64,000 nucleotides of DNA from Orbicella franksi (lineage: Eukaryota), in assembly GCA_964199315.1 (NCBI GenBank), contig OZ116709.1:12834001-12898000 (forward strand), written 5' to 3'. Made by a program: the position numbers and the translations under genes. Positions 1 to 28,800 of this stretch are shown in pieces. The notes under the pieces were generated by a model, which was not told the DNA's origin, did not search any database, and saw only the letters and a program-made list of their open reading frames with translations. The number at the start of each line of letters is the position of its first letter. The first letter of the stretch is position 1.

Positions 1-3000
1 GAACGCCATTCTCATCAGTATACTCTTCAACTTCCTCTTGTGGCTCGTCGTCGGATAGTGCAACAGGAAATTTAACTTCCGCTGGTTCGGTCCGTTGACC
101 TTCTCTTTTGATACTGGTTGTTGTAATGGTTCTCCTGACAATCCGCCTAACACGAACTCCGTTCTCATCAACATACTCCTCAACTTCTTCGGGTGATTCA
201 TCTTCCATTCCCTCGATTTCAGGAATAACTATTTCCCGATTCAAAGTTGCCGAAGGAACTCTCTCCATTACGTCATCGTGGTCAAGATCTTCCTTTAACT
301 CTGGTTTTGTTGACTGCGACGGCACAATTAAGAAAGAAATGTCTCCTGTAGGTTGTCTAGGTTCTTCTGATGCTGGTTCACTCTCCTCCATCCATTCAGG
401 AAGAACAACTTCACGTGTTTGCACTGAAGGAACAACATCATCAGAGTCAAAATAAACAGGAGCTGCTAACTCAAACATCTTTGCACCTGGACCGTCCTTT
501 GCTTCATCAACAGATGTACGGATTACACTTCTTGTTGTAATGGTTCGCCTCACAATTCTCCTCACACGAACGCCATTTTCGTCAATATATTCCTCGAAAT
601 CTTCTGGTGATTCATCTTCAGATGGTGTTAAAGGAAATTTAACTTCCACTGGTCCAACCTCGGCGCCTCCTCTTTTTTTTGTTGCCGTTGTAGCGATTCG
701 TTTAACAATTCTTCTCACCCGAACACCATTCTCATCAATATACTCCTCGACTTCCTCTGGACTTTCACCTTCTGATGATGCAACAGGAAATTTAACCTCC
801 ACTGGTTCAGTCCCTTCACTTTCTCTTTTAATACTGGTTGTCGTGATGGTTCTCCTGACAATCCGCCTCACCCGAGAACCGTTCTCATCAACAAATTCTT
901 CAACTTCTTCGGGTGATTCATCTTCCATTCCCTCGATTTCAGGCATAACTATTTCCCGATTCAAAGTTGTCGAGGTAACTCTCTCCATTTCGTCCTCGCG
1001 ATCAAGGTCTTCTTTTAACCCAGGTTCTTTAGGCTGAGAAGATAGAATTAAGAAAGAAATGTCATCTGTAGGCTGTCTCGGTTCTTCTGATCCTGGTTCA
1101 CTCTCCTCCATCCATTCAGGAAGGACAACTTCACGTGTTTGCACTGAGGGAACAACATCATCAGAGTCAAGGTAAACAGGAGCAGCTGACTCAAACATCT
1201 TTGCACCTGGTCCGTCCTTTGCTTCATCAACAGATGAACGGATTATACTTCTTGTTGTAATAGCTCGCCTCACAGTTCTCCTCACACGAACGCCATTTTC
1301 GTCAATATATTCCTCGAAATCTTCTGGTGATTCATCCTCAGATGGTGTTAAAGGAAATTTAACTTCCACTGGTCCAATCTCAGCGCCTTCTCTTTTTGTA
1401 GTTGCCGTTGTAACGATTCGTTTTACAATTCTTCTCACCCGAACACCATTCTCATCAATATACTCCTCGACTTCCTCTGGACTTTCACCGTCTGATAGTG
1501 CAACAGGAAATTTAACTTCTACTGGTTCAGTCCCTTGACCTTCTCTTTTGATACTGGTTGTGGTGATGGTTCTCCTGACAATCCGCCTCACCCGAGAACC
1601 GTTCTCATCAACATACTCTTCAACTTCTTCGGGTGATTCATCTTCCATTCCCTCGATTTCAGGCATAACTATTTCCCGATTCAAAGTTGTCGAGGTAACT
1701 CTCTCCATTACGTCCTCGGAATCAAGGTCTTCTTTTGACCCAGGTTCTTTAGGCTGAGAAGGCAGAATTAACAAAGAAATGTCTTCTGAAGGCTGTCTCG
1801 GTTCTTTTGATGCTGGTTCACTCTCCTCCATCCATTCAGGAAGGACAACTTCACGTGTTTGCACTGAAGGAACAACATCATCAGAGTCAAGATAAACAGG
1901 AGCTGCTGACTCAAACATCTTTGTACCTGGATCATCCTTCGCTTCATCAACAGATGTACGGATTATACCTCTTGTTGTAATGGTTCGCCTCACAATTCTC
2001 CTCACTCGAACGCCATTTTCGTCAATATATTCTTCGACTTCTTCTGGTGACTCGTCTTCGGATGGTGTAACAGGAAATTTGACTTCCACTGGTCCAATCC
2101 CCGGGCCTTCTCTTTTGATAGTTGCGGTTGTAATGGTTCGTTTTACAATTCTTCTCACCCGAACACCATTCTCATCAATATACTCCTCGACTTTCTCTGG
2201 ACTTTCACCGTCTGATGGTGCAACAGGAAATTTAACCTCCACTGGTTCAGTCCGTTGACCTTCTCTTTTGATACTGGTTGTGGTGATGGTTCTCCTGACA
2301 ATCCGCCTCACCCGAACGCCGTTCTCATCAACATACTCTTCAACTTCTTCGGGTGATTCATCTTCCATTCCCTCGATTTCAGGCATAACTATTTCCCGAT
2401 TCAAAGTTGTCGAGGTAACTCTCTCCATTACCTCCTCGGAGTCAAGGTCTTCTTTTGACCCAGGTTCTTTAGGCTGAGAAGGCAGAATCAAGAAAGAAAT
2501 GTCTTCTGAACGCTGTCCAGGTTCTTCTGATCCTGGTTCACTCTCCTCCATCCATTTAGGAAGGACAACTTCACGTGTTTGCACTGAAGGAACAACATCA
2601 TCAGAGTCAAGGTAAACAGGAGCTGCTGACTCAAACATCTTTGTACCTGGATCATCCTTCGCTTCATCAACAGATGTACGGATTATACTTCTTGTTGTAA
2701 TGGTTCGCCTCACAGTTCTTCTCACTCCAACACCATTTTCGTCAATATATTCTTCGACTTCTTCTGGTGACTCGTCTTCGGATGGTGTAACAGGAAATTT
2801 GACTTCCACTGGTCCAATCCCCGGGCCTTCTCTTTTGATAGTTGCGGTTGTAATGGTTCGTTTTACAATTCTTCTCACCCGAACACCATTCTCATCAATA
2901 TACTCCTCGACTTCCTCTGGACTTTCACCTTCTGATGATGCAACAGGAAATTTAACTTCTACTGGTTCAGTCCCTTGACCTTCTCTTTTGATACTGGTTG

Positions 3001-4240
3001 TGGTGATGGTTCTCCTGACAATCCGCCTCACCCGAGAACCGTTCTCATCAACATACTCTTCAACTTCTTCGGGTGATTCATCTTCCATTCCCTCGATTTC
3101 AGGCATAACTATTTCCCGATTCAAAGTTGTCGAGGTAACTCTCTCCATTACGTCCTCGGAATCAAGGTCTTCTTTTGACCCAGGTTCTTTAGGCTGAGAA
3201 GGCAGAATTAACAAAGAAATGTCTTCTGAAGGCTGTCTCGGTTCTTTTGATGCTGGTTCACTCTCCTCCATCCATTCAGGAAGAACAACTTCACGTGTTT
3301 GCACTGAAGGAACAACATCATCAGAGTCAAGATAAACAGGAGCTGCTGACTCAAACATCTTTGTACCTGGATCATCCTTCGCTTCATCAACAGATGTACG
3401 GATTACACTACTTGTTGTAATGGTTCGCCTCACAATTCTCCTCACACGAACACCATTTTCGTCAATATATTCTTCGACTTCTTCTGGTGACTCGTCTCCA
3501 GATGGTGTTACAGGAAATTTAACTTCCACTGGTCTAATCTCAGCGCCTTCTCTTTTGATAGTTGCCGTTGTAATGGTTCGTTTTACAATTCTTCTCACTC
3601 GAACACCATTCTCATCAATATACTCCTCGACTTCCTCTGGACTTTCACCTTCTGATGATGCAACAGGAAATTTAACCTCCACTGGTTCAGTCCCTTCACT
3701 TTCTCTTTTGATACTGGTTGTCGTGATGGTTCTCCTGACAATCCGCCTCACCCGAGCGCCGTTCTCATCAACATACTCTTCAACTTCTTCGGGTGATTCA
3801 TCTTCCATTCCCTCGATTTCAGGCATAACTATTTCCCTATTCAAAGTTGTCGAGGTAACTCTCTCCATTACGTCCTCGCGGTCAAGGTCTCCTTTTGACT
3901 GAGGTTCTCTTGGCTGGGACGGCAGAATTACGAAAGAAATGTCCTGTGTAGGTTGTCTCGGTTCTTCCGATGCTGGTTCACTCTCTTCCATCCATTCAGG
4001 AAGGACAACTTCACGTGTTTGCACTGAAGGAACAACATCATCAGAGTCAAGGTAAACAGGCGCCGCTGACTCAAACATCCTTGCACCTGGACCGTCGTTT
4101 GTTTCATCAACAGATGTACGAATTATACTTCTTGTTGTAATGGTTCGCCTCACAATTCTTCTCACACGAACACCATTTTCATCAACATATTCCTCGACGT
4201 CTTCTGGGGATTCGTGTTCTGATGGTGCCACAGGAAATTT
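1..4240. repeat. Coding tandem repeat, period 720 bp, about 5.9 copies in window; each unit is 153+153+414 bp
   Basis: Lines at 541, 1261, 1981, 2701, 3421 and 4141 align without indels; sub-repeat starts at 3421, 3574 and 3727. Confidence 0.97.
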
Positions 4241-6289
4241 CATCCTAGCCCTGGTAATCACCATTCTCTTCACCCGAACACCATTTTCATCAATATACTC
4301 TTCACTTTCTTCTGGTGACTCCTCTTCTGAGGGTACTACTGGAGACCTGATCTCCACCCGTTCAAGACCTTGATCTTCCCTTTTAATGGTTGTTGTTGTA
4401 ATGGTTCGCCTCACAATTCTCTTTATTCGAACACCATTTTCGTAAATATATTCTTCGACGTCTTCCGGCGATTCATCTTCTGATGGTACTACAGGAAATG
4501 TTACCTCGACGGGTTCAATTTGTCGAGCTTCTTTCTTAACAGTTTGATGTGGATCGTCCTTGACTTCATCAACCTCCATTGGTGCCTCGTTTTCAAAGGA
4601 CGAGCTTAGAACAGGGATTGTCACTTTTCTTTCAATGTTGATAAAAGACGCATCTTCTTTTATTTCAGGCCTTTCTTTAACCTGGGACACAGAGCTGGTA
4701 ATTCTTTTTGGATAATCTAAACCATCCGCTTTGAGAGGTTCTTCAGGTTTGTCAGGCACAACAACAAACCATTTGGGAACCCGTGGGTACCTTTTAACCT
4801 CGAGTACCACAATCTCTTCATTAAACTCGTCGGCTTCATCATCCTCTGATGTTTCATCATCTCCCTGTACATCGTCTATTTCCACTTGAGGGTCCGCATC
4901 ACGTTCCGTGGGGGGCGTAGGTGATGGTTCCTTGTGCGCCCGTTTTCGTGGTATCTCAGATATCTCGGACAGACCCTCTGGAGGTTCTATTCGTTTACGA
5001 TCGCGAATTTCTAGGCTTTCTTTGTCCTCTTCAAGATCCAGGAGGGATATTACAGGCCGGTGCCTTTCAACAACGGTTGCCGACAGTTCTTCGACGATGT
5101 CCGGTCTCTCAGGGATATGCACTGTCGGTAAAACGGGTTGACGTGGTTCTACCTGTATCGATGAGAGAGAAATCTCCTTTGGTGTTGAAGGTTTTTCTTT
5201 GACGGTTTCGAGCCACTCTGGGTAAGAAACATTTCTTTCTACTCTTGCAAGATTAAAATTTTCGTCTTGATCCATGGGTGGCTGATTATCCTCATGTATA
5301 GGCAATGATGCTGGTGACGGCAACTGAACAGTCACAGGTTGTACAGTTCTTTTCAACCGAGTCGTCAATGTGGTTTTGGTGAGCTTTTGTGTGCGACGAC
5401 CGTCGTCTGAGGTAAACGTGTGAATTCTTTCAGTTTCCTCGGGTCCTTCTCTAAGCTCGCGTTGACCATGATCTCCTGGTTTCAGGACAACTTTCACCGC
5501 CCCATCTCGCAACACCGTCTTGGGAGTAGTGGTAAAAGACGTCCGTACAACTCTTCTTACTCGCTGACCATTTTCGTCTGTGTACTCCTCTACGTCTTCT
5601 CCTGGCTCTGAAGGGACATCAACATCCATCTTCTGGGTGGGTAAACGACGCTCTGACCTGATTATTGTCTTGGTGGTCGTTACTTTAGAAATCCTCTTCA
5701 CCTGGCGACCTTCTTCATCAACGTATTCCTCGATAACTTCTTCGGGCTTCACTATCTTTCTTACTGAACGCTGCAAAGGAATACTCACCTCACTTGGTTC
5801 TTTCTCCAAGTAAACAGGTGCCGCTGATTCCTGCACGAGAGGTTGTCTACCACTGTCCTCCCCAGTCTCATCTTCATCTTCTTCGCTGTAATCTTCTTCA
5901 TCAGATGATCCTCCAAGAAGCGGTCTTCCCCACTCGAACACTGATTTACTTACTACAGCACCTTTCTCGCCTTGTTTAGTCTCTTGTTCGAGTTTGTGGG
6001 GGACTGGAATTTTAAAGCTTTCTATAGTGCCCTTTTTCACTGTGGTAACTCCAAAAGGAGACTTGTCCTCAATAGTTTTATCACCATCAGCGGTTCTTAA
6101 AGCAGACGTTCCTAATTCAAACGGTCTAGCAGATAGCTCTCCTTTGAATCTTGACCTTTCGTGAGTTTCTACGACTTGTGGCTCCGATTTAACTGATTTG
6201 GGAACCTCAAATCCTTCAATCTGACTCTTTTTTACTGTTGTGACCTTAAATGGTACGGTAGAATCGCCGTCTCCCTGAGGCTCATCTTC
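1..6289 (-). CDS. DST/MACF1: Giant exon, at least 2096 codons, acidic/Thr-rich with 240-aa tandem repeats, runs off the window
   Basis: Acceptor TTTCCTTGTATCTTTAG|GAA; no stop found in this frame on reading by eye; begins [21 protein letters not shown]. Confidence 0.9.
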
Positions 6290-9200
6290 CTAAAGATACA
6301 AGGAAATATCATGCATGTCATAAACGTACGAAAAGCTCCCAACAGCGCTCGTTAAGGTACGCACTTGACAGCTGATAGAGCGCCTCCTGCACTCCTGAGT
6401 TCTACATTCTTGCTTGGTTCTTCGGTTGGTGAGGGGACGAACTATTTAATCAGCTTTGTCTAGAGCTATTAATTAAATTAACATGTAGATGGGGTTTTTT
6501 AATAACAAGCAAAAGAGCAAATGCTGCGATAATTGTTGTTGAGAATACGTTCTCAACATTGAAGGTACTTGTCAATCAGTTGCCAAAATAAAATACGAAA
6601 TTCTTTGGAAACCCGTTAAGGTGGGCGGGGCCCAATTAAACATTCACAAGCAAGGCGATAAATCCTCCGAGAGCGAATAAATCATCTAGAATTATATTTT
6701 ACGAACATTTCCTAAGAAATGGTATGGGTTTAAATATAATGAAAATGTCAGAGCGCCACGCCAAGATCCTCGGAAGTTAGTAAAAACACTATCCTAGGTA
6801 ACAACATGTTTTACATCCTTTTCCAAGATTAAATTAATCTCTCAATGTAAATTTACGAGTCCGTGAGCACGTATTTTTCACAAGCAATACTGATGGGGCT
6901 GATATCGTCCTTGATTTCTAAGAGCCAAAGAACCACCAGAAGAAAAAACAACCTTCAATAAACAGCAAACAAAACCACCATCGATCGCTATTTGGGATTC
7001 CCGCGTTTCGAGCTAAAATTTCAAAACAAGTTTCCAAAAAACTAGTTGCCTTTAATGTTGAATTTTATACCTAAGATTTATGACTAAGAAATCAAAAGAA
7101 ATATTTGAAAGAAAGCAGTTTTTTCATATGATCAACTAGACATCACGAGGCTCGTCGAGTCATTTGATTTTGTCGTCGAACTGAGCGTGTATATCCACCA
7201 ATAAGAATCTGTTAAATGCCACTTCACATTGTGTGGAAGACCACGTCAATCAAATATTCAATTTGCGTTTGGTTTTTCAAATTTCCTTGAACTATATCGC
7301 TCGCGATATATAGCATCTTTGGTTCTGAACTAGGCGAAATTTCCAGCACAATGTGCAAGAATTCGTCTTGTTGAACTGATACACGAACTTTAAATTTTCG
7401 TCAGTGACAGAGTCGCATAAAAATCCGTTTTAGTCCGTTATGACCAAATTTGCATTTACACCAACAGAAAACAACTCATGCATTCAAAGTTATAATTCCA
7501 CTCGAAGGAGCCTTGCCACGTTGTTAGAATACATCTTCCCATTCTGCTTAAATCGAACAAATTAAAGCTTCAAAACGCTAAGCTAGCAAACAATTTGCAA
7601 GTAATAATAAATCAAACAGGATAGCCAAAGATTGGAAGAAGACTAACACGATATGAGACCAACGAATTTCAAAAAGTTAGGACAAATACGTTGCTCTTTC
7701 AGCGTCTTAATCAGAGAACAAGTTAAAGGTTCAACTTACATCTTTTCCTTGCTTCCTAAAGAAGCCAAAAACTCGAGCAACAGCGGAGGATATCGGATTC
7801 ATTTGGACGTTCTGTCCGCACGCCGTCGCCAAATAATCATTCACCCTTGAGACAGCAAGCGATTAGCATTGGAAGAGAGCCGCCAAATTCTCCCGAATTG
7901 TTCACGAAGAACTGTCGTATCGCGATATAGACTGTTCATTAACTGTCACCTATGACGAGACGAAAATGTCGCCAAAGCTTTCGAGATGGTCCAACACAAT
8001 AGGCAGAAATTCAGAGTCCCTTGAAATAACATTATAAAACAAATGAATTCAAGACCGAAAGCCGAGTTGCCAAGGTTAACACGTCACAGCAAAACCTGTC
8101 TGATATAGTCGTGCGGATGTGGCAAATTAACAAGTAAATTCTCGAAAATTTATCACTGTCTTGAGGTTATAATATTCTTTCCGCATTCAAAGCAACTACA
8201 AAAGAGAAATCACCCCACTCTAAAATCATAAAGCTGTATTCTTTGATTCAACGCCACCGAAAGAAAAAACAAAGACTATCCCTGGAGGCTATTTCAACGA
8301 CGATTTGTATAACAAAAAGAATGCCAGGCCTTCAATCAAAATGGGAAACCGTCCAACATGGGAAACCGGTCAGAGGGAAAGCAGACAACAGATCGAATTA
8401 GTGTTTAGGGCAACGCTTAGCTTAACTGTTAATTTTTACACATATTGTTAGTCGGAGTTAATTTACGGGGTTAAGGTTAGTTTTTGGTAAGGGTTAGAGT
8501 TAGCGTTACTATGCAATCTGTGTTTTACACTGAACGCATGCGTTACATAGCAATCCTTCAAGATTCGAATGTTCAAGATTCGCACCAAGAAGTCGGGAGC
8601 GTCACCCAAATGGCTACAAGCTGATGTTAGGTAGAATTTTACTAAACTGTACAAAAAAGTATTTACCTCATCCTGCAGTTCACCGTCACCAGGCTCCACA
8701 AACAGCGCGACTGTCACGTTATTTCTATGAGACACCACTTGGCATGCAGGCTACCTAACTGCTTCTCTCAAATGGTCACATAATGGAGCGTGAAGGTGTG
8801 CAGTGTGAAAAGTGAAGGCTGATGCGTGAAGCGTAAGCGTGACGCATGAAATGTGAATCGCGAAACACGAAGAGTGAGACTTATCACGTGAGGGCATGCG
8901 TACAATCTTTCCGGACTCACCTTGTCTCCAACGCGATTTCTGAGCTCCAGAAATCTGGTTTGTAGTTGGTCCCACTGGTTGTTGACTCCGTCCACCTTGT
9001 CTATAACAACACTTGGGTCTTGATCTGTATCCTGTAGATGGCGAACCACCTCCTGTCCAGTCTCATTCGTGTTCGCAAGCTGGTAATTAAGTCTGGTCAC
9101 CTCGAGATCTAAAGCCTTTGGAAAGACAAGGGAATGGTCAAGAGATATTGACCGAGTTTTGAGACTTAAAATGAAAACAATAAAAAGGGGTAAGGACTGT

Positions 9201-12200
9201 TGAGACTGGGAAAGATTGAGATGGGTTAAAAACGACAAACTTGAAAAAGTGTACTCTAATTTGTGATTAGAATTGAGCTATTTTACTTTACCCCGCTGAA
9301 TAATCTCGAAATGCATCAGTTACGGTAAAATCCCAACCATAGTTTCTCTCTTACCTTGACCCGCCTGCTCAGATTCTTGGGATCTTCCTCTTGTAAGAGA
9401 GATTCAATTTCTCCAGTCCGTCGTTTGATCTGGACCGTGAGAGACTGGACCGACTCGTCCAGATTCTTGACTGTACTCCATGTGCTCTCCAGTTCCTTTT
9501 GTCGCTCGTTTGACGCCACCACGATGAACTCCATCCGACCTCGAACGCTAGCAATCTCCTCCTATAGGCAAGGCCAGAAGCCATGTTAGTAACACAACAT
9601 ACCACCTACAAGTAGTTTAGACTTAACGAGCAATGCATTAAAGTGTGGTAACAATTTACAGTAAAACATTTACATACGATAGTTTGGGAATGATTTTAGA
9701 CTAATATTTAGGGCAACCTTAGTTTATTCAACAACTTGCTACACACAAGGGCACTGGCCAAGGTTAACAATGCTAGAGAAGGGAGTTAATACTAGCCTGG
9801 ATTTCGTCGCTTCCAGCAGCTCCTTCGCGACCTTCTAACAAATCATTTCCCGCCTTCAACAACAGCGCAACATCCCCCTTGTTCTGGGCAATTTCTTTCT
9901 GAAGAGTCTAAGAAAACAAGTCGACAGCAGTTCTGTTAGCATAGATTGTCATCAGGTTTTGATTTTCATAATCAGACCATAAAACCAAGCGAAAGCAACT
10001 ATGTCTTTAAATGTACCAAAGTTCTGTTAAGAAACGAAAACAAATTCAACTTAGTCTACGTGGTATCAAAAAGGTATCGTTACGCGTTATTCATGGAATA
10101 GGCAGGGCAAACGAAAATCTGGCATGTGAACTCTCAGTTATAAGTTCAGAATTCACTTTTCATATTATGATAGTCACGCAGCGTTACCTTCCCAAAAGTT
10201 GCATGATGGAAAAGTACTCCTTGCCTCTGTCGTCTGTCTGTCTGTCTAGCTGGCTGTGTCTGTCTGTCGGTCGGTCTGTCGGTGTGTCTGTCTGTCTGTC
10301 TGTCTGTCTGCCTGCCTGTCTGTTTGTTTGTCTCTTTTTCAGTTTACGTGGAAACATATTAACCGGATGGTCGAATAATGCAACGTTTAGACGTGTTTCA
10401 CACATCAGCCCCTGGATCTTACCTTGTGTTCAGATATTTGTCGCCTGATTGTATCCGTATCTCCCCCCACAGGTTCCAGCTTTCCCAGTCTTTTCTCCGT
10501 CCGTCCCAGGAAAATAGTTATATTCCTCACCAGTCTCCTGTATTTCTCCATCTGTAACACTGTCGTCTCTAACGTTACATTGCGCGTTTCCAAACGCTTC
10601 CACACTTCATCGTACCGCGTACGTACTGATGTTAAGTCCTCCTCGAGAGGGCACTGGGGCGTGTCACTGGGCTGCTGGGCTGTGATACTGATGATGACCT
10701 TTCCCAGTCCCACAAGGAGATCGATTTGAGCCTTGTACTGCACGGCTTCGTTCTGTAACGCCTGCAATATAGAGTCAAACACCCCATTACAACTGGGAAA
10801 TTCGTCCGGCTTCTTGAAACTGCAAGGAAGCTGTACATTCCCATTCAGAGATAGGATGTGTGGGTAACTAGCGCAAGCTGTAAATGATGAGTGCTTACCA
10901 CTAAACGGCACCCACTATCCAATCATAGCTCACACTGGGTTACCCACACAGTCCTGGTGTCAAATGGCGACGCTTACTCTCCAAGAAGAAAAAATTCAAA
11001 AATTCGAACAAATCATGGCAAATTTAATATTCGATTTAATTGACCTAAATTATGGAATGAACTCGATGAAAGATTCAAGTGTTGTACTTCTAATCAATTT
11101 AAAAAAGAACTAACTTCGCATTTCATTAGTCTCTGTTAATCTTTACTGATATTTTGATGGTATATATCTATTCATTTTGTTTTGTTTTGTATATTTACTC
11201 TTGTACCAAGTTTATAATATTTATGTGTACCAATGTATTTGTTGTGCCTCTTTCCTGACTCTCACATTTTTAATTATTATAATTACGGTCACCTAACTAG
11301 TTTAGCTTTTTAGTTATTTTGGGTGTCCCACTACTGTATGTACTTTACTGTTTATTTATTTATTTCTAATTATAATCTTGTAAATTCTTTTAGTTGTTTA
11401 CAGTAGTAGAAATAAACCGTTGTTGTGGACTCAGGAGCGGTGACTTACTTTAATACCCTTGTGAATATTTGGAGCATTGGTGATGGAATAAATTGGAATT
11501 GGAATATAGAAGAATAGATGGAATAAGTTGAATATCCAGCTAGGCCCAATGATATAAGAAGTGAGTATCTGGCATTTAAGGCGTACTGTCCTTTGCTTTA
11601 CGTATCATTCGGTAGCTGCATTCTAAAAATAGCTCGAGATTATCCCTGTCTGACCCAACCCTTTATCAAATTTTAAATTCAATTTTTTCAATTTCCTGCA
11701 ACATTTTCCCAATAATTTACCCCCTTCCCCAATGCCGTCATAACCTTCGTATTACCTTCTGTTCTTTCATCTGTGAGCTGAGCACATCAGGGTCGAGACC
11801 CACAGGGGGTATGGAGACAAGCCTCACTTCAATGTTGTCCAACCAGACAGTGACGTTTTTGTAGACTGAGTAAAACTTCTCTGATTGCTCCTGTAATTCA
11901 TCAAACTTAGCCGTGGTGTTTAGCAGTTTAATGGCCAAAGCCTGCCAGTTCTTGTTGACGCGATCTAACGTTTCCAGAATGATGGACTGCTGTTTGTTCT
12001 TCTCCAGATTGATCAGCTCGTGACCTCCTTGATTCACAGATTGGAAAGCTGGCCGCATCTTCTCCACTTCATCTTGGAAATGCTAATAAACAAAAAAACA
12101 GTAAAGCATTACTTGCAAGCGTTTGTAGGAGTTATTGAAATATAGCATTACGTGACATTCTTTTAACAAGCGTTGACAAATCAGTCAAAACCGATCCCCG

Positions 12201-16864: not shown

Positions 16865-19800
16865 TAGAAACCTGAGGCTGAGTTTTTGAAAAGAACATAA
16901 TTTTGTGCGTTGAAAGTTAGTAAGTACAATAGAATTGTATGTGTTTCACTAAACCGAATAAAATTCTTCCTTTCTCCAAACGGCAAACCAGCCAAAAAAG
17001 CCCGCGCCGGAAAAACAATATTCTTTAATAAAACAAGAGTGTAAGACACACGGTGTAAAACGATCTCGAAAAACACAGGCCGATTTTCGTCTGTTGTTTC
17101 GGCGGAGACATAATTGAATTATAACTTCTGACAGTCGTTGAGCCAGATCAGCCGGCCGTTTAACGACAAGTCAAAAGACAGAATTGTGTATTAATAGTCA
17201 AAGCATTTCGAGACACTTCTTTACTGTCGTCCCTCGAAACATAACTAACAAAAAGACAATGTGTGGAGCCGTGACCTCACTGAAAGTTCAGTTTGTTCTT
17301 CACAACAATAAATTTCCAACTTTTTCCAAAAGACAAAAATATACAAAAATGTACTACAAAAATAACCAAGAACGTCTGATAAATTGATATTGTGGTGAAA
17401 GTTTAAGGACAGATTTCTTGGTTTCAAGTGGACAAAACTCCTCGCCCTATTTTAGTACCGAAAATGGCAATTTCTACGCTTTTACCCTTGTATTCGTGAG
17501 ACTGTGGGCATGGCCATTTTTTTTTTCGTTCTACTTCAGTTTAACCGTTCGAAATGCAAAGCTTGTTGTGAAAATGACTCAGTTCAGTTACTTCTTTTTT
17601 TCGAAGCGAACGGATAAATAGGCAACTTAGCTTCGATTGCCGCTAATCTTCCGCGTCCGGTCTCCGTTCCACAGACGATCAATCGATCTATAATTGATTG
17701 ATTGTGCTAGCCGAAACTTTTTGGGAAAGAACGTTTCTCCTTTTCTCGAAACATTTCGTTAATTATACATACCAGGAATGGATGCAGCAGTTCCTCAAAC
17801 TTCGTCAACTTCTCGTGAATCCTAACGAGTCTCATGTAGCGATTGTCAAGCTCGGCTTGTAGTCGTCCCCATCTCGCTTCCAAGATGCTCATCTTCGAGT
17901 CGAGTTCGGCTTTTTTCGTGGGCGACAAAAGCTGACCGCTGCCTTTCAAGAACTGCTTGCTCTGTAAGAGCATAACTTCAACTGGTTTCTTCCGCTCATA
18001 GACAGCCTTAGTGAATCTCTAGTTAAAACAAAACAACAAAAACAATTAGTCAAACTGGAAGGGTATCGGTTTACAGTCGTCAAAGGCTTTATTTCCGACC
18101 ACGCCGCCCGAAAGTTCTCAAACTGAAACACGATCTCCTAAAGGTGACTGACGATTTAGCAGCTCATGAAGAAGATAACCATAATAGAGTAACAATATTA
18201 ACCCTTGAGATTTACTTTATATTGCTTACAAGCAATTCATGGGGTAACTAATCAGTGTGCATAGGCAATAAAGACAAGAGATGAAGACGTTAGCACAGAT
18301 TTCAAGAATACACATGACTACACTGGGCTAATAAGTATTCTATAGAAACCCTTTCAATATATCAAAAACCAAATCAATACGGCAATATGTCATTAGCTTC
18401 TTTACGTTTTCAATAACATGCATTGCGATATAATAAACTTGTGTTGATGTATCGGGGAAGAGGCAGTTAGCGTGTAAATGCTGCTATTAAGGGATAAAAA
18501 TAGGTTACTTTGCTGAAATAATTTCAGGGACTGATCGAATCAGGCAAAGTCATTCATAATTTCAACAACGACCTGTTATCACTTGAGAGAAATGGAAGCA
18601 ACACTCAAGAAATTTCAAACGGCTCCTGTCGAATCCATAATGTAAACAAACGTTTGCTAAACGCATTCTTACTTAATTAAGCCAATTTGTTCGCTCATGA
18701 CAAGTCAAGTTGCAATCGTAAAAGAAACAAAAGCGACACTTGTGATGGAGTGAATGAAAATGATCTTCATTTCACTGTAGCTTCAGTGCTCTGAATTTTC
18801 TAAATGGTCGTTAAAACAGTGTGGCGCTAAAAACAAACCAAACTGTGAAAGCGAACATAACTGTACCGTGAGTCGACCCTTTGCATATACTGTACAGTGC
18901 AAATTAAAAAACGTTGCGGAGCAACGCCAGACCCATTAATAGTACGCTCTAAAGCGACACTTGTGTTAACGAACCTGGGCTCCATGTTACAAAGCATCGC
19001 AAAAACTAACAGCCAAGGCGTCCCTGTCTCCAACGGAATCTTAAACTCCATCAGCTCCGATAATAAAAGAGTCTTAACTTGACCTTATTGTCGCCGGCGA
19101 CAAAGGCGATCAACGCTTCATGTCGAACGCTTATTTGCATTTGATCTACAGCTCTCTTTCTGGGCTCCGTAGTGCTAACTTGAGTTCACACACGCTATTT
19201 GTTTGTTTTACGTGATTATTAAAATCACCAGGAAAAAATGAACGCTGATTAAATGTAGATTAAACAAAAACTCTTGGCTTTTTCAGCATACTAGTCTCAA
19301 GGGAACCGAACGCAACGGATAAAAATACAAAAAGTTTGCAAAACTAAGACGTCGACCAAAGCCGATTGAATTGAGAGAGAAAGTTACGCATACACTACCT
19401 CCAGTTGAAAAAAAAACTTAAAAACTTGTTGAAAGTTGAATCAACTAAACAAACAGCCATCTTGTTTTTTAATATCCGTGATAATTAAATTTAGCAATTC
19501 CCGCCCTGACGGATAAAGCCACAATATGTTATCATTCAATTAAAAGCTAAGGAACTGAACTTTCATGTGGTGCTGTTTATTATGCTGTATATGCAAGTCG
19601 GTTCTAACAGCTTTTGTTGAGTCTGTGCCTGAAACCCTAGAGTGTACAATACAGGTGAAGAATTTCGAGAAATACTTTCACGTGGTGCTGTTTATTATAA
19701 AGTACAAAGTGGTTTTATCGTTAATTGTTCCTGGTGGATAAAACCCAAGTGTGTGACCATTGAAATAGAAGCTCTTGAGATGAGATTTCAACCAGTGTAG

Positions 19801-22800
19801 TGTATTATTTTTTTCAGTCTGTGATGTGAACCTAGTGTGTGACCATTTAAATGAAAGCTACTAAGCTGAAATTTCCATCTGGTGCTATTTACAATACTGC
19901 ATTATCTTTTCAGTCTGTGGGTAAGACGTTTGAACCTAGTGTGCGACCATTCAAATGAAAGCCATTGAGCCGAGATTTCATCTCGTGCTATTTACAATAC
20001 TGTATGAACCTCTCCGTCTGTGGTTTGACCCTCGTGTGTGAGTATTTTCATCACAACTACTGAAGCATACCTTATAGTGCTGTTCGCTTATCAATTCCTC
20101 CAAAACAAGAATATTAGGATTTGCGAAATTTGTCTTAATTTCTTATTCTTTCGAATATACTCCGCTGTACGCGATTAATCAAAAAATACTCCTAACTTCT
20201 TTTCTTGCAGTGTGTTTCATCTATCTTGAGAGAAATTTAGTTTCGGTCATGGCTGTTACTCCAATATGATCAGATGATACTTATAGCCTAACCTTAATAC
20301 ACCTTGATGCTTATAACTTATCTCCTTTCATATTTTATGACAAGAGAATTTGCAAATTGATCGCAGCCGGAGGCAACTGTCTCACGCCTTGAAATAAACA
20401 ATAAGCATCTCTGTTCACCAATGAAAGTCGAGTAAGAGAGGTCAGTCTTGAATTCCCTCCTATCCCATTCTTACCTTCTGTTCCTCAATCTGTTCTTCAA
20501 GCTGCTTGACATCTGCGGGAGATGCTGTTTGTGCTACCAGGGTTTTCTCAGTGTCTGACAACCAGTCAAGTAAGTGCTGGATAGAGGAACACCACTGTAA
20601 ACACGCTTCTTCAACCTGTACAATGAAAAGGTAAACATCACATGAAGGAGGTGTGAAGTTCACGCAACGAAACGGTGACTGTCACAAGGCAGTTGGGTGA
20701 ACGTCACGCCCGGAAGAATGAAATGTCACGCACGCTAAAATGAGGTAAATGTTCATAGGGGAGAAGTGAACGTCACATAAGGAAAACATGAAAGTCACAC
20801 AACTGACAAGGAAATTTATAACGGTAAGCTAACGTTTTGTGACGACTCGTGAACCATTTCACAAATTTCGTACTGTCTTTCTGTTATCAGGGTTGTAAAA
20901 TAGGAACAAATTAACCTCTTTGTGTTCTTTTCCCTGTCTCTTCAAAGTGTCCACAAGCATTTCCATGACGATCTGAACCTCATTCAAAAGTTTCTCGTAT
21001 CTGGCGTTCATACTCATCAGAGATGCTATGATTTCCTCGCGGCCCTTCTGGGCACTTTCCAGGAGGGGGTTGGCAGGGTCTCGGGACTCGGGCAAGTGAT
21101 GCAAGCTGTGACGGTATTCCTCCAGGTTCCTTTCCCACACCTAGCAACATGTACAAGACACAACGTAAAACACGCACATGCAAAGGGCTTTTATGACGAC
21201 ATGATTGAACTTCGCAGTTAAACACACAACTTAAGCAGCTGAAAAAACAAAATCCAGGCTTGAACGGAATTGGAACCCATGACCTCTGCGAAACCGGTGC
21301 AGTGCTCCACCAACTGAGCTATCAAGCCAACTGGGAGCTGGTCACGTTGTGAGTTCGTAATATACCCGCAGATGGTAAAGGATTTTTGTAGTTTCATGAG
21401 AATGTGTGAAGCAGCTTACGAAGCTACAAACTACGAGGCGTCAATAAATATATCATAAAATCCGAGGCTTCAAGTAGTAATTATATCAAACACGAGAGAC
21501 AATGTTTCAACGGGATATCCAAACACCGAGACGAGAGTTGAAAATACGATGCGCAGCGGAGTATTTTTGACGAAATTCCAGGTGTTTGGATAGCCGATGA
21601 AATACTGTCTCCAGTGTTTGATATACATGTATCTTCTCAATCGAAACAAAAACTAAGGAGAAAACGGAGAAGTAAAGGCATCAAAGTCTATGCTAATTAA
21701 GACCGGGTATCCAAACCTCCTTCAAGGTTGTGATTTTCTCTGTTTTATCTTGAACTGTTAATTAGTTTGAGAATGAGAATGCTTTTCTTTAGTGCATGTC
21801 TTATAAGATGTCAAGTTCTTTATTGATTTCGCCACAACTTGGTCTGCAAGAACAAATCACCCGTACAAGCCTGACGTCAAACCCGCAAGATTAAAATGTC
21901 ATAAACATTCATTTTTCGTTAGGATTGTTAAATTATGGAATGAATTACCAAAAGAAGTAGTAGAAGCTGATAACCTTCAGCAGTTTAAACTAACCTCAAA
22001 TTGTACTTAAATGTTTTAATGTAATTAAGAATCTTAATTTTAATTGTAATTTTGATTTTTTTTTCTCATAGGGATAACCTCTTAACTTCCTTTTCTAGAT
22101 GCATCTTTCTTTCTTTTTCTTGTTTTTTGTGTTTTTCCTCATTTTTAGTTTTTAATTGTATGTGTAGTTTGCATCTGAAATAAATAAAGTATGTGTGTAT
22201 GCATGTTTATCAGGCGCTTATCTGCAGGGGAGTCTCATCAACATCAAGGTGCTTTCATTAATGCTGTCTCACCTGTGATTCGTCCGTGTATTCATGTCCC
22301 ATGGTGCAGAGAGTTTTGATTGGGACTTGCTGACTTCGAATATCTGTGTACAGAGCCTGAAATGACAAAAATAAATAATATGGTTATGAACAACTTTGGA
22401 ATCATTAGGACTTTTAAACCACCAAGGAGGATTTACCCTTCTGTACTGAACTGTCCCGTGGAGTGCAGTTTGATCACAGTCATTACCTAAATGCGTTCTT
22501 GAGGAGAAGTAATGAAAGCTTGCATCTCTCACTGATCCTGAAAGTTAGTTACAAGGTCTCCGACATAACCAACCCAGCAAGGGCTTTTCCATTGGAAACC
22601 TAGTCCAATGAATTTCCCACTAGGGTCTGGTAAGGGTCTATAGCTGCCACTGTCCAGTGAGCTAAGGAAACCTTTTGCCCATTGGTTATTGCTCTGTTTA
22701 AAGGTTTGATTTTGTCCCTCTTATTTCAAAGCTACATGTACTTAATAAAACAGCTTGCAGGCAATTTATTTTCTCAACACTTTGACCGAACGAAAATAAT

Positions 22801-25800
22801 TCCAACTCACTGTAAGTTCTTCCATAACACTTTCAGCATTACTACTTTCTCTGCTCGAGTCTCGGTCTTGGACTTTCTCCTCAACTCTTTCTAACCAGTC
22901 CAATTCATTCTGTAATCCAGCTTGAAACTGCTCTAGTTTGTGTTCAGCTTTGACGAGTCCCACAAGACGGTTATCAATCTGATGCTGGGCAGCTTCCCAT
23001 CTCTCCAGAATGGCCTGTACTCTGGCCTTGTCGAAGTCCTTTAAGTCAGGAAGCGACCTCTGAATGTCTTCAATCTTGCTCTTTCTTGGCTCTATTTCAG
23101 TTTGAAGTGCTCCCTATTAAACATACGATTTGCTATCGTTATTCATTCAACAACGTTCCCATTAAGTTACAGTAGATTAAAGCAAAAATATGCCACCCGG
23201 CTATGTCATGCTGTTGTCAATACGTTAGAGGGCAAAACTTGGCAAACCAATTAAAGGAGATAATTGATTGATTTTAACAGCAAGTGCTGCTATCTACAAC
23301 AGTTTCAGTAACCATGTGAAAACTTAGTTATTCCATTTGACATAATTCGCATCTAAGTTGTTTATCATGCGATAAACTTGTGGAATCATGTTTCAGAAAC
23401 ATTTGAAAGCTTATAAATCACGTGGAAGTTATGTTTCACTATGGAGGTCAACTTAGACCAAAGGAAATAACAGCTGTTATCTGTTGGTACCTGTAAAACT
23501 TTGATCTGATGTTGAATGTCTTTCAGGTTGGCAGTGAGACCAGGCTGTTGTATGAGAATGATTTCAACGCGTCGCAGGCTATCTTCAAGATCTGACACAA
23601 GTTCAGCAATGTTCAGCAAGAACACAAGCCTGATAAACAATAATATACAGATTTCAGATTTTCAGATTCAGATTTTTTATTAATTGACACTATTTACAGA
23701 CATATTTCACTATCACACACTATTACAAAAAATTCATTAATTAAAATAAGGAAAATATAATAATAATAAAACCAAAACAAAATGTGCTCAGTGACCAAAG
23801 AAGCATATGCTATCGTGTTGGTCACTGACACGTTCAAAAATAACAGACAAGACACATCAAGTAATAGAAACAATGCAATAAAGGAAGTAAAATGTGAGTA
23901 ACAAAAGTATTCGAAATAAACAAGTTAAATGAATAAATCATAATGCATCAAATGTGAAATCAGTGTATGCTAGCATGGGAAACAAAATAATTTCGGAAAA
24001 TCTGTAAAATGCAAACAAAGTATGGCCTGCTTTCACTTAATGAATCAGGGCTTACATATTCAAAAAAAAAAGTACAAAAAAGAACTTACATATTCAGATG
24101 TAAGACATTTGAACATTTTATACAGAACTGATCTATCTTTGACTAGGTTTGACAGCAAAACAGTCATGGAATATTTGTTTCTCAACAAATCATTGTGTAT
24201 AGTACACAAATTATTGACAATGGCACTTTTGTCTGAAATAAAATTGACTTGACCTGCCAAAATCTACAGTTGCCTTTTGATTAGTTAACAGTAAACATCA
24301 GGATGTCTCTGCCAACTCACATTCTATGCCACGTGTACGTTTCTTCCTTCACTCTGATCCACTTCTCAGACAGTAGACCTAACTTGCTTTGCAGTTGCGG
24401 GTCCATTTTGGTGATTAGTGCTTGCATCAGAGAGTTGTACTGTGGAGCTCTTTGAGTCTGTTGCTCTTTTAAATTCTGATAATTATACAAACACAAAGAA
24501 CAGACAGCAACATTGGTCAGTAAAGAAAACCAAAATGTTTAAACATATTTGGTATGTTAATTGAAGGCCTCTCCTCCTAAAAAAGTTACATGCATGTGTT
24601 GACTCCATCATGGACAAAAGTCTTTGAAGGACAAATCTGCAATTTGAGCTTTCTTCTCACTCACAAACCAATTGAAATGTCTTATGAGAATACAACTTCC
24701 CTTCACTTCACCCTGCTCCTGCCCCCACCCCACAGACAGGGTTGAAAACTAGTACCTTAATTTCTCCAAAGTTTCAACAATGTATTGGTGGGGGTGGGGG
24801 GAAATAGCACTGTACTACATCACTATCTCAAGGACGTTTGTCCACTACTGAAGGAGTCTTGCCACTAAGCTTTTTACCTCAACTTGCTGTAGAGTACTGG
24901 ACAGGCTTCCTTGGTTTAGAGTCTCTCGTGACTTGGTTTTCAAAAAGGCTTCTGCTCTGTTAAGCCAGGCCAGTAGATCATTTAGAGTGCTCTGAGCACT
25001 TTGCTACAAAGAGGAAAAGTGCCAAAAGTTCAAATTAACATTCAAAAGTAGAAAACAAGCATTATAAGCAGATTATGAGTACAAAGAAAGTCTGCATACA
25101 AGCCAAGTGGCCCATCAGTCCAGAGCTTAACCCAGTTTCTATAGCATGAGGCGACTAGGAGTATTTCTACTCCCCCCTGGATGGGATGCTAGTCCATTGC
25201 AGGGTTACCCCCAGCATTAAGTTCACCGGTACCCATTTATACACCTGGGTGGAGAGAGGCACTGCGAGAGTAAAGCGTCTTGCCCAAGAACACAACACAA
25301 TGTCCCCAGCCAGGGCTCGAACTCGCACCGCTCGATCCAGAGATGAGTACACTAACCATAAGGCCACCGTGCCTCCCTGGTGCTCAGATCATGAGTGGAA
25401 TATATAAAAAATATTTGTAAGCTGCATACATGGCATAACAAAATAAAATAACCCATTTTACTGTTCTGCACCAAGTGATCAGGCCCTTAAGCCTCATGAT
25501 ACAAACCTTGCTGCTTCTCCACTGTAAACTACATGTAGTTTCTAACAACTGCAAGGTCCACCCAGGCCTCGCCTTTATGCATAGGCTTGGTTACATTACA
25601 CAGACCTGTAAAGTGGTCTATTGATTGTACATGTACATGTACACTATCCTCATAGGTTAATTCTAGATTGCTACTGAAATCAATCCCAACAGAAAGAAGA
25701 TATGTCCATCTACAATCCTGGTCGAAAGTCTTGGAACACTTTGCACTTTTGCCAACATAATTATGGTCTTTCTGTCCACCCTCTCCCCCTCCCCACCTCC

Positions 25801-28800
25801 AACACAATGTGGATGTTGGTTCATCCAAAGTAGACCCACTATTCCAACATTGCTTGGCGGGGACGGGGGCTCAGAAAATTGAATAGTGACTTCATACCTT
25901 CAAATAATGCATCACCAGTTGGTATTTTGTCAAATGTGCCAAGGAAATTTGGCCAAGATTGTAGATCTAAGACTAATGACTTGCGTTCCACATTTATTAA
26001 ATAAACCCACTGTACCTTATCAAGGGTTTGCACACTTTGCATTCCATTTGTTATGGTTTCTACAGGTTGTTCACTTAGTGAGACCGTAGCTGCCGTCACT
26101 GGGTCTTGTTCAACTAGTCTTTCTGTGATACCAACTATTTCTTGATCATCAGGCATTTGGATATCTTTCAAAAGCTGGTCAACATCTTTTGAGCCTGCCA
26201 AAAGTGACAGCTTACCCTGAAGAAAAAAATGAAAAGATCAGTTATAACTGGTTTTACATTGCATAAATATTCTCTATGATGTCAATGATACCTTAATTTT
26301 GTTGGCACTGTATGTAAGTCTGTTCCCATCTGGAGGATTGGGGGGGAAATATACCACTATTGTGATTGCTAGATCTTAACTCATGTTTTCCATAGCATGA
26401 ACAGTTTAAGAGCATTGCTATCCCCTGCATAGGATGCTAGTCCAACACAAGTCACCCTCCTTCAGCCTCAAGAATATCAGCCCAAAGAATATCTGAAATC
26501 TGTTTCCCTGAAAATTTGGTCACCAAGTCCACCGAATAAAAAGCATGGCCTGAACCATTTTTCTTTCTGGGAAAAGGTCCCACCCCACCCCTTATTCTTT
26601 ATTCACTCAATCTGACTCTGACAAACATGTGAAAAGTGTTGACATACCTTCTCTGGAGAGGTGGATTTGATCACTTTCACATTTGTAAAGACCTGTTCCT
26701 TGCTGAGAGCTTGCTTCAGGTTCCAGTGTCTTGTTCTCCACAGTGTTAATAAATGTTTATACTGAATTTCCAACCTATTGGACCAAACACAAGGAAAAAT
26801 TACTGGTACAGCATGGTAAACCAAACTTATAACAGACATTCTCTCACTTAGAGCGGTCCACTCCAGTTCTTCTCTGATTTTGAACTAGAAAATAACTAAA
26901 TGATAAATAAGGAGTTGGGAGTGTTAACAAATTGATACCGTATTTTCCCGTGTATAAGTCGACCTTTCAAGACTTAAAAATCAGTCCAAAAATTCGCCCT
27001 CGACTTATACATGAGTCAAAACTTGAGATCCAAGCGCCAGTCAAATAATTAGCATAATAATTGTCTTTCAATGTTAACAAACATGTGATAAGCGGCAGCA
27101 CAGTTTACAACGTACGTTCGCTTAGCGATCTGTCTCTCCATATCAGAGCTTCAAGTTAAAATGCATCAACATTTATTCGTTAAATTTTAACCTGGATCTT
27201 GTAGACACTCACTGGCTCAATTTTGTCATAAAGAACCAATATTTTTCCTTTAAATAAAGCTGTGGTAAAGCCGCTCGGAGAAAATATCTTTCGCGCTTGG
27301 AACTTCTCTGCTTGGTAACCTGGCAGGATACGAGTGCGAGGACTTCTGTACCAGTACTTGACCGATTTCAAGGCTTGACTACCAAGTTCCCAACACACGC
27401 TTTGCACTTTGTTTATGGCATCGTTCTGAAAGTCGTGAGCTTCTTTGGTGTTTTGCCTGTCTTATAAAGCCACTTTTAATCTCTTCGCACTTAAAAAGGC
27501 TTGTTTGAAATCCTTACGTTTGATTTTTGTGAGCATTTTACAAAAATTATCATCGAAAAGTCTGCATGCACATGTGTTGCTAAACTGGGTATAACGCTCG
27601 TATACGTGCCATAATAAGCTTTAAAACTGCGCATTGAAACATGCTGTGATTTGTTTACATATCTGTGGTAGCTGAAAGATAATTTTAAGAAATACAAGAT
27701 AAGTTTTCCAAGAAATCCTTACCTGGAAATTAAGAAAATCTAGTTTTTGACCTCAAAAATTGGGGGTCGACTTATACACGGGATCGACTAATACACGGGT
27801 AAATACGGTAGATGTGTACACATTTTGGGGGTTTTATTTACAAAGTGTTTTCTAATGAGCACTGAAAACCATCATGGCCATTTCACTGCTTAGTGACACT
27901 TGTCTAGTGATTGATAACTCTTCCAAACTGGAGAGAAACAACCTTTGCATCATTTCAACTGCTTTAGTAAGCAAGGATAGATAGTAGTGCTTATGGTAGA
28001 TATATGAAGAAAATCAATTTTGGAGTCAGAGATCGAGTGGACCATTCTTAGTGAGAGCCTCTTAACAATTCATGAATTAGAAAAGAAATACAGGCATTAA
28101 AAAAAAGCACATAACAGATTAGTTAACATTGATTCATCCTAATTTGCAATTAAACTCATCAACAATAGACGAGCTTGGGCAAAGTGCCTGGAAAGATAGT
28201 GGAGCCTCACGCACAAGAGCTGGGCACGTAGGGTAACCATGACAACCCTGTAAAGCAACCACCAGGCACCGTCACACTGCAAAAAAGAGTGGAACCATGA
28301 TACCTACCTCATACTTACCAGAAAGGGAGGAAAGGCAGGGAGCAAAGTCGCCAAGCACAGTCGAAAAGGCAAGAATGCACGTGAGAATGAGCTGACCTCA
28401 AAAGCCGAGCTGTAAAACCACATGACCACCTGCAAACCTCAACTACTGCGCATGTCCACAACAGGGGAAGCCACTGACCAGCATTGTTTCGCGTTTAACT
28501 TAGCTCAAATTGCAGTTAACCGCATTAAAATGTTTCAAGTTTTTCAGCCAAAGTAAGTCATCTCATCAAAATTTCTCTCAACATCTACACATTTGATTTG
28601 TTACTGTCAGTTACAACTAAGTGAACACAAGAAGATCTTACAAAGACCCTGTAGAACCTAATACAGGAAGTTGAATCATTCAGGTCCAACACAGATTTAC
28701 AGTAAGTAACATAAGTTATATCATTTTACCTTGTTGAAAATTCAGTAGCCTCTACGTCAGGAGCAGGAATAACAAAACATACTGACGGCACTTCACACTG

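Follow-up and report, generated by a model that had tools for sequence, protein, structure and literature searches.

The window analysed here is a stretch of 64,000 nucleotides from the coral Orbicella franksi (GenBank assembly GCA_964199315.1, contig OZ116709.1, positions 12,834,001 to 12,898,000), and the gene under study lies on its minus strand. Judged from its sequence, this gene is a spectraplakin with an upstream CH1-CH2 actin-binding domain of the plakin/spectrin type. In PDB searches, the exon open reading frames (ORFs) at 53768-53568 and 47803-47540 match the CH1 and CH2 parts of this domain as found in MACF1, plectin and beta-spectrin (E 4e-7 to 8e-5). Single exon ORFs gave no Pfam match above threshold, and the identity of the host gene rests on the PDB sequence matches. 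Between the CH exons and the element considered below, the gene is occupied by spectrin-like exons. The last of the exons upstream is followed by an intron of 2.6 kb (8920-6290) and then by a giant exon coding for hairpin repeats, which opens in phase 0 at 6289 behind the acceptor ...tatctttAG (6291-6290) and has 2096 open codons up to the window edge. Within the 2.6 kb intron lies a 63-nt ORF, here called the leader. A first-pass annotation of the window, made from the sequence alone, had proposed it as an internal first exon that could make the giant exon the N-terminus of a protein of its own.

The leader can be read directly from the sequence. Its ATG occupies 7802-7800 on the minus strand and is followed by 20 further codons, with 7740 as the last coding base (...cgtccaaATGAATCCG...GGAAAAGAT|GTAAGTTGA). 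The 21 codons end on GAT|GTAAGT, and a TGA inside the donor sequence GTAAGTTGA closes the leader frame upon intron retention. Between the upstream stop codon (TAA, 7865-7863) and the ATG at 7802 there is no further in-frame ATG. The first-pass annotation was correct in every detail of this anatomy, i.e. start codon, codon number, near-consensus donor and upstream in-frame stop, and reading also confirms the match in phase 0 that it had noticed between the leader donor and the acceptor at 6289. The region 7000-8400 is single-copy and the leader peptide has no second copy in the window’s own genome, which rules out an origin from a repeat or transposon. Taken alone, however, the configuration is not compelling. 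In a non-coding control on the plus strand, an ATG-initiated ORF ended in phase 0 at 3 of 28 GTRAGT sites, and one of these three ORFs had at least 21 codons. Such a configuration is therefore uncommon in one 2.6 kb intron (~0.05-0.1 expected), but only mildly unusual.

It is the comparative data that decide, because ATG, phase-0 donor and coding signature recur in six other genomes. To find orthologous loci in other cnidarian assemblies, the 300 N-terminal residues of the giant exon served as the first query and a two-sequence profile as the second. The ORF-type proteins obtained led to contigs, which were taken with flanks of 10 kb. The leader was compared in seven taxa, namely the window and the loci L002 to L007, and the giant-exon acceptor in eight loci. 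The remaining contig, L008, stops 1459 nt upstream of the acceptor, has no GTRAGT in that part and stands outside the leader comparison. With the 21-residue peptide as query, tblastn found a match on the plus strand of the contig, 1.2-1.8 kb (1217-1805 nt) upstream of the giant-exon acceptor in L002, L003, L004, L005, L006 and L007. Each of these six mini-ORFs is collinear, has one ATG with an in-frame stop upstream of it (at a distance of 2-4 codons in five of the six and of nine codons in L007) and runs directly from its last codon into GT[AG]AGT. In six of the seven taxa the sequence after the last codon reads GTRAGTTGA or GTAAGTTCA. The ATG and its context CCAAATG are conserved, and the conservation in the alignment starts at that context. 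At the far end of the predicted intron, the giant-exon acceptor ...[ct]tAG|G.. is in phase 0 in all eight loci. The encoded peptides are a related peptide of 21 residues in L003, MNPITSAVGRVIGFFRKRGKD in L004, MSLSSVVERVFGFFRRRGKA in L005, MNISVVERVFGFFRRREKA in L002, MNVKSAVSRVLGYFWKRGKA in L007 and MSSIVHRVFVLFGWRGKT in L006. The first-pass annotation had held its proposal to be refutable by a lack of conservation of ATG and frame in close relatives; ATG, frame, peptide and phase-0 donor are kept in all six genomes.

The changes that did occur within the leader carry a coding signature. Its coding lengths in the seven taxa are 63, 63, 63, 60, 57, 60 and 54 nt, every one a multiple of 3, and of the six possible frames no other than that of the leader is open throughout the seven taxa. 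Among 20 aligned codon columns, the variable columns at codon positions 1, 2 and 3 number 10, 10 and 17, an excess at the third position. Synonymous changes are in many pairs as numerous as the non-synonymous ones (for example 7 versus 4 codon changes between the window and L004), and they are frequent even within the conserved RVFGFF core. An ORF on the opposite strand (7653-7850, plus) was ruled out as the conserved frame, since the antisense frames gain stops in L006 and L007 and the sites that vary would be first codon positions in this ORF. In blastn comparisons with L004, L005, L002 and L007, alignment of the intron is confined to the leader exon, with at most 200 nt of 5′ flanking sequence, and to two or three further short blocks. 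The taxa are far apart: at the protein level, identity to the window is 54-92% in the flanking exons and 39-65% at the start of the giant exon (89% in L003, which is a close relative). For L006 and L007, the most distant of them, it is 44-50% in the leader and 39-61% in the flanking exons. The identity of the leader is thus comparable to that of the flanking exons, and the leader evolves about as fast as the neighbouring coding sequence.

With its sequence features, conservation and coding signature established, we consider it probable that the 63-nt ORF at 7802-7740 is a genuine and conserved alternative first coding exon of the coral spectraplakin, with an internal start and phase-0 splicing downstream. 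The narrower claim, that the leader is a functional coding exon, we would grade higher than this full statement. In the mechanism that we propose, transcription would start inside the 2.6 kb intron before the giant exon, at a putative internal promoter within ~200 nt upstream of the ATG, and translation would start at the ATG at 7802. The GTAAGT donor at 7739 would then be joined in phase 0 with the acceptor at 6289, or with the next phase-0 exon in transcripts that skip the giant exon. The product would begin with a basic, aromatic-rich peptide of 18-21 residues, followed by the acidic start of the giant hairpin-repeat region, the remaining rod and the C-terminus. Because the exons for the calponin-homology actin-binding domain lie upstream (~53.7-47.5 kb), an isoform starting at 7802 would be devoid of this domain, of the plakin domain and of the first spectrin repeats, in agreement with what the first-pass annotation had expected. 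The features on which this proposal draws are collected in Table 1.

Table 1. Features of the leader exon and its surroundings in the window (UTR, untranslated region).
Feature	Position	Strand	Basis
Leader coding exon, ATG + 20 codons, 63 nt	7740..7802	-	Direct reading; orthologous mini-ORFs in L002-L007
Putative splice donor GTAAGTTGA, phase 0	7731..7739	-	Direct reading; GT[AG]AGT right after the last codon in 7/7 taxa
Upstream in-frame stop TAA, 21 codons 5′ of the ATG	7863..7865	-	Direct reading
Predicted intron from leader exon to giant exon, 1450 nt	6290..7739	-	Equivalent distance 1217-1805 nt in orthologues
Giant repeat exon, acceptor AG 6291-6290, phase 0; extends beyond the window edge	1..6289	-	Acceptor and phase 0 in eight loci
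Last upstream constitutive exon, spectrin-repeat region, GTGAGT donor at 8920, phase 0	8921..9115	-	RNA-contig loose ends 6291, 8920/8921
Conserved 5′ flank, putative 5′UTR and core promoter	7803..8003	-	blastn 8003-7715 to L004, 7942-7726 to L005
Octamer-like element ATGCTAAT	7862-7869	-	TGCTAAT (mostly ATGCTAAT) 58-71 nt before the leader ATG in 6/7 taxa
TATA-like element TATAT	7929-7925	-	ATA invariant in the alignment, ~125 nt upstream of the ATG

The octamer-like element, which recurs at a corresponding offset in L002-L006, resembles a POU/homeodomain site. If transcription starts upstream of it, the ATG that it contains would open a short, non-conserved upstream ORF. The conserved 5′ flank, the TGCTAAT motif and the TATA-like element fit a promoter and a 5′UTR, but they prove nothing, and the promoter stays putative.

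The data on splice joints are Logan contigs of two RNA runs, X8 and X9. In these contigs the exons have a depth of ~300-550, and the intron 6290-8920 is present as one unbroken, unspliced contig with a depth of 45-49. The loose ends at 6291 and 8920 are proof that 8921 is joined to 6289 and hence that the acceptor at 6289 is in use. At 8921 there is one more loose end (reverse complement AACATTGAAGACGAAATA), by which this donor is also joined to another exon, so that a comparable share of transcripts skips the giant exon. In run X9, the contig depths for the joining of donor 8921 to the giant exon and to the other downstream exon are 230 and 245, respectively. In view of these similar depths, skipping of the giant exon is common. 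Fourteen RNA-labelled runs contain 7600-8100 nearly whole and thus unspliced. In both contig runs the unspliced coverage of the 2.6 kb intron is ~4.5 times that of the neighbouring short intron (9116-9353, 239 nt), which has a depth of 10-11. Slow splicing beside an alternative exon or extra intronic transcription could account for the higher coverage.

The skipping of the giant exon bears on the alternative that survives best. The leader may be real but joined in most transcripts to the phase-0 exon after the giant exon, which would yield a short isoform devoid of both the N-terminal domains and the giant repeat. The giant exon would then not form the start of a separate protein. Both acceptors take phase 0, and donor 8921 joins either of them at the depths given above. 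However, each of the seven taxa has the leader immediately before the giant exon, with the distance constrained to 1.2-1.8 kb, and the acceptor nearest to the leader is that of the giant exon. The data favour neither junction, and we regard predominant splicing past the giant exon as unlikely, though as a possibility to be taken seriously.

Several results weigh against an alternative first exon with an internal start and splicing downstream. At 7740, the X8 and X9 contigs contain no branch, joint, loose end or contig break, and the only partners of the acceptor at 6289 in these contigs are the intron itself and donor 8921. Because such contigs drop rare variants, the lack of a joint at 7740 is missing support and not a refutation. 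The core claim of the first-pass annotation, a genuine coding first exon whose phase fits the giant exon, is strongly backed by conservation in six genomes, but the contigs show no such joint. JGI metagenome contigs contain no exact match to the predicted spliced junction, in a collection with genomic copies only: a control search for the leader returned three contigs (L009-L011), all of them unspliced genomic copies of the same species. The JGI collection therefore cannot test splicing. In the protein collection, a query with the 43-aa open frame found no short ORF bearing the leader peptide. Neither tblastn nor a small hidden Markov model detected the leader in Nematostella (L013), the two upstream exons of which are 37-47% identical to those of the window, or in the distant L012. 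The CpG density that the first-pass annotation had pointed to is present, with an observed/expected ratio of 1.33 at 7001-8000. This value is the window maximum, shared with 17001-18000, and compares with 0.90-0.94 in the adjoining kilobases and 0.77 overall. It reflects small counts (48 CpG per kb) without a sharp island, and 1-21 kb as a whole is CpG-normal. The enrichment is thus real yet modest, and too weak to count as promoter evidence. Finally, we infer all three of the transcription start site with its promoter, the splice partner and the function of the peptide.

The missing donor use in the X8 and X9 contigs would also suit a conserved non-coding element, i.e. an intronic splicing regulator or an enhancer of giant-exon inclusion that is open in one frame by accident, and the same intron does contain further conserved non-coding blocks (8751-8640 and 6907-6866). 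Such an element is improbable in view of the invariant ATG and phase-0 GTRAGT, of length changes that are all multiples of 3, of the third-position excess and the synonymous changes in the RVFGFF core, and of the one frame in six that is open in all taxa. Even less probable is an internal cassette or “poison” exon between 8921 and 6289. The window, L003 and L005 have an in-frame AG at 9 nt before the ATG (e.g. acAG|AAC GTC CAA ATG), which would define an in-frame cassette of 72 nt. However, the in-frame AG is absent in four of the seven taxa: the nearby AG is out of frame in L002 and L004, and L006 and L007 lack an AG anywhere from the stop to the ATG. In addition, no polypyrimidine tract precedes any of these sites, and the in-frame stop is close to the ATG, with only 2-4 codons between them in five orthologues and nine in L007. 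As the AG is not conserved and lacks a pyrimidine tract, and as conservation begins at CCAAATG, we read the leader as a first coding exon. A functionless chance ORF next to a donor-like hexamer would agree with the only mild improbability of the configuration and with the lack of RNA support in the X8 and X9 contigs, but it is effectively refuted already by collinear conservation in six further genomes, up to taxa with flanking exons of 40-60% identity.

The other conserved blocks of the intron have features of their own. The block at 8640-8751 (minus strand), just downstream of exon 9115-8921, is conserved with L002, L004 and L005. Its conserved parts include a ...CGCTGTTTGTGGAGC... core and a donor-like AG|GTRAATAC at ~8668, and the window alone also has TGCATG in it. 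The block could regulate whether the giant exon is included, or it could be a small exon that is not annotated. The element at 6866-6907 (minus strand) comprises ~40 nt (CGATA.CAGCCCCATCAGTATTGCT...), is 79-84% identical in L005 and L002 and precedes the giant-exon acceptor by ~600 nt.

In all seven taxa the leader peptide has 18-21 residues, among them 2-3 aromatic ones, and a net charge of +3 to +5, while the ten residues that follow it form an acidic run with a charge of -2 to -6. The first-pass annotation had described the peptide as an amphipathic basic helix. The helical hydrophobic moment of the window peptide is 0.50, a value reached by 1.6% of shuffles, which agrees with this description. 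In L002, the amphipathy of the whole peptide is not significant, but its core is strongly amphipathic. We compared the peptide with known types of targeting sequence. N-myristoylation as in dystonin-a3 is ruled out, because the second residue is never Gly but Asn or Ser throughout the seven taxa. A hydrophobic membrane anchor needs ~18 or more residues, but the longest uncharged stretch has ~9. The peptide also differs from a classical mitochondrial presequence and from a plectin-1b-like anchor, with a Glu at residue 7 or 9 in L002 and L005 and an amphipathy that is significant only in the window peptide. The mitochondrial address that the first-pass annotation had considered is thus weakened, due to the Glu in two orthologues and the lack of a hydrophobic anchor. 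Membrane targeting, which it had named as well, we infer as a possible role. A basic-hydrophobic motif resembling the MARCKS effector was also considered, and a rough BH-type score, on an approximate scale, gave 0.80-1.01 in the seven taxa. Our best guess from the sequence is that the conserved 11-residue cluster is most likely a short amphipathic basic-hydrophobic module that may bind a membrane or a partner.

Alternative N-termini are well known in this family. Spectraplakins have multiple tissue-specific promoters and first exons, and their N-terminal isoforms include ones without CH1 or without the whole actin-binding domain (PMC3352950, PMC4914211). Examples are Shot A-D, the BPAG1 isoforms, MACF1a1-3, MACF1c without actin-binding domain, and MACF1-4 with plectin repeats in its place (PMC3352950, PMC4914211). 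In MACF1-4, the plectin repeats form the N-terminus and are followed by the rod, EF-hand and GAR domains (Gong et al. 2001, summarised in PMC4914211). MACF1-4 follows the same logic as the coral leader with the giant repeat exon, in that a long optional repeat region becomes the N-terminus in place of the actin-binding domain. According to the domain table in PMC4914211, however, MACF1-4 keeps the plakin domain, which would be missing from the proposed coral isoform. MACF1c, BPAG1e/BPAG1n3 and Shot C/D resemble the proposed isoform in that they are truncated at the N-terminus by alternative start sites. In contrast to it, they start within or just after the actin-binding domain and retain the plakin domain, while the coral start lies far downstream, past the plakin domain and several spectrin repeats and directly before the optional giant exon. 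A second kind of precedent is provided by N-terminal targeting exons of plakins, namely the mitochondrial anchor of plectin 1b, the transmembrane exon of dystonin-a2 and the myristoylation exon of dystonin-a3. In these cases, too, a short first exon encodes only a targeting peptide that sets the subcellular address of a giant linker. The coral leader differs from them by having neither a hydrophobic stretch of anchor length nor a Met-Gly start, but a basic-aromatic cluster instead. We know of no counterpart of the coral leader of 18-21 residues. The coral case follows the known logic of alternative N-termini in spectraplakins and differs in the position of the proposed start and in the short conserved leader.

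Spectraplakins are the main linkers of actin, microtubules and membranes, and their function is largely set by the N-terminus in use. An internal start that is kept across genomes with neighbouring exons of only 40-60% identity implies a selected isoform. This isoform would have neither actin-binding nor plakin modules and would carry an undescribed giant repeat at its N-terminal end, behind a conserved short peptide. We tentatively hypothesize, as a possibility that is more doubtful than the exon itself, that stony corals and close relatives of theirs use a dedicated internal promoter together with the basic-aromatic leader to make the giant exon the N-terminus of a separate microtubule-binding, non-actin protein. 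In certain cell types or life stages, the leader would attach this protein to an acidic membrane or to a specific partner. If so, the spectraplakin would have been re-used in a lineage-specific manner as a membrane-to-microtubule spacer. The leader offers a testable handle on the role of the giant hairpin-repeat exon, via the location of the protein and the cells in which the internal promoter is active. For annotation, gene models that ignore the 63-nt intronic exon would miss the isoform.

Some further observations concern the relatives of the leader intron and of the hairpin repeats. In L003, the leader-bearing segment of the intron occurs twice (3257-5294 and 7811-10145), ~4.56 kb apart and with identical leader copies at 3950 and 8508, which reflects either a recent tandem duplication or an assembly artefact. 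In the window, the hairpin motif also occurs outside the giant exon, as the exon ORF at 41309-41734 (minus strand) holds a hairpin-like motif resembling the repeat unit. At the Nematostella locus (L013; GCA_000209225.1, DS469641.1, 9513/10001), old gene models split the spectraplakin, close to its own repeat region, into two genes, an upstream model with CH, SH3 and spectrin domains and a downstream model of 3258 aa with hairpin motifs and spectrin repeats. The coral giant-exon profile matches the downstream model. The short proteins P0021 and P0024 look like translations of a C-to-T converted (bisulfite-type) giant-exon start, which suggests that public collections contain bisulfite data from this coral or a related one. 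P0025, a hairpin-motif protein of 525 aa, opens with a Cys-rich MKACIRWCCPCCLRG leader. This leader may be a palmitoylation site and perhaps a second case of a short targeting leader before the hairpin-motif family. In the window as a whole, the blocks 22001-33000 and 44001-53000 are strongly CpG-depleted, with observed/expected ratios of 0.13-0.57 in all but two 1-kb bins, compared with 0.6-1.3 in the rest of the gene. This alternation of CpG-depleted and CpG-normal blocks suggests a mosaic of historical methylation inside one gene.

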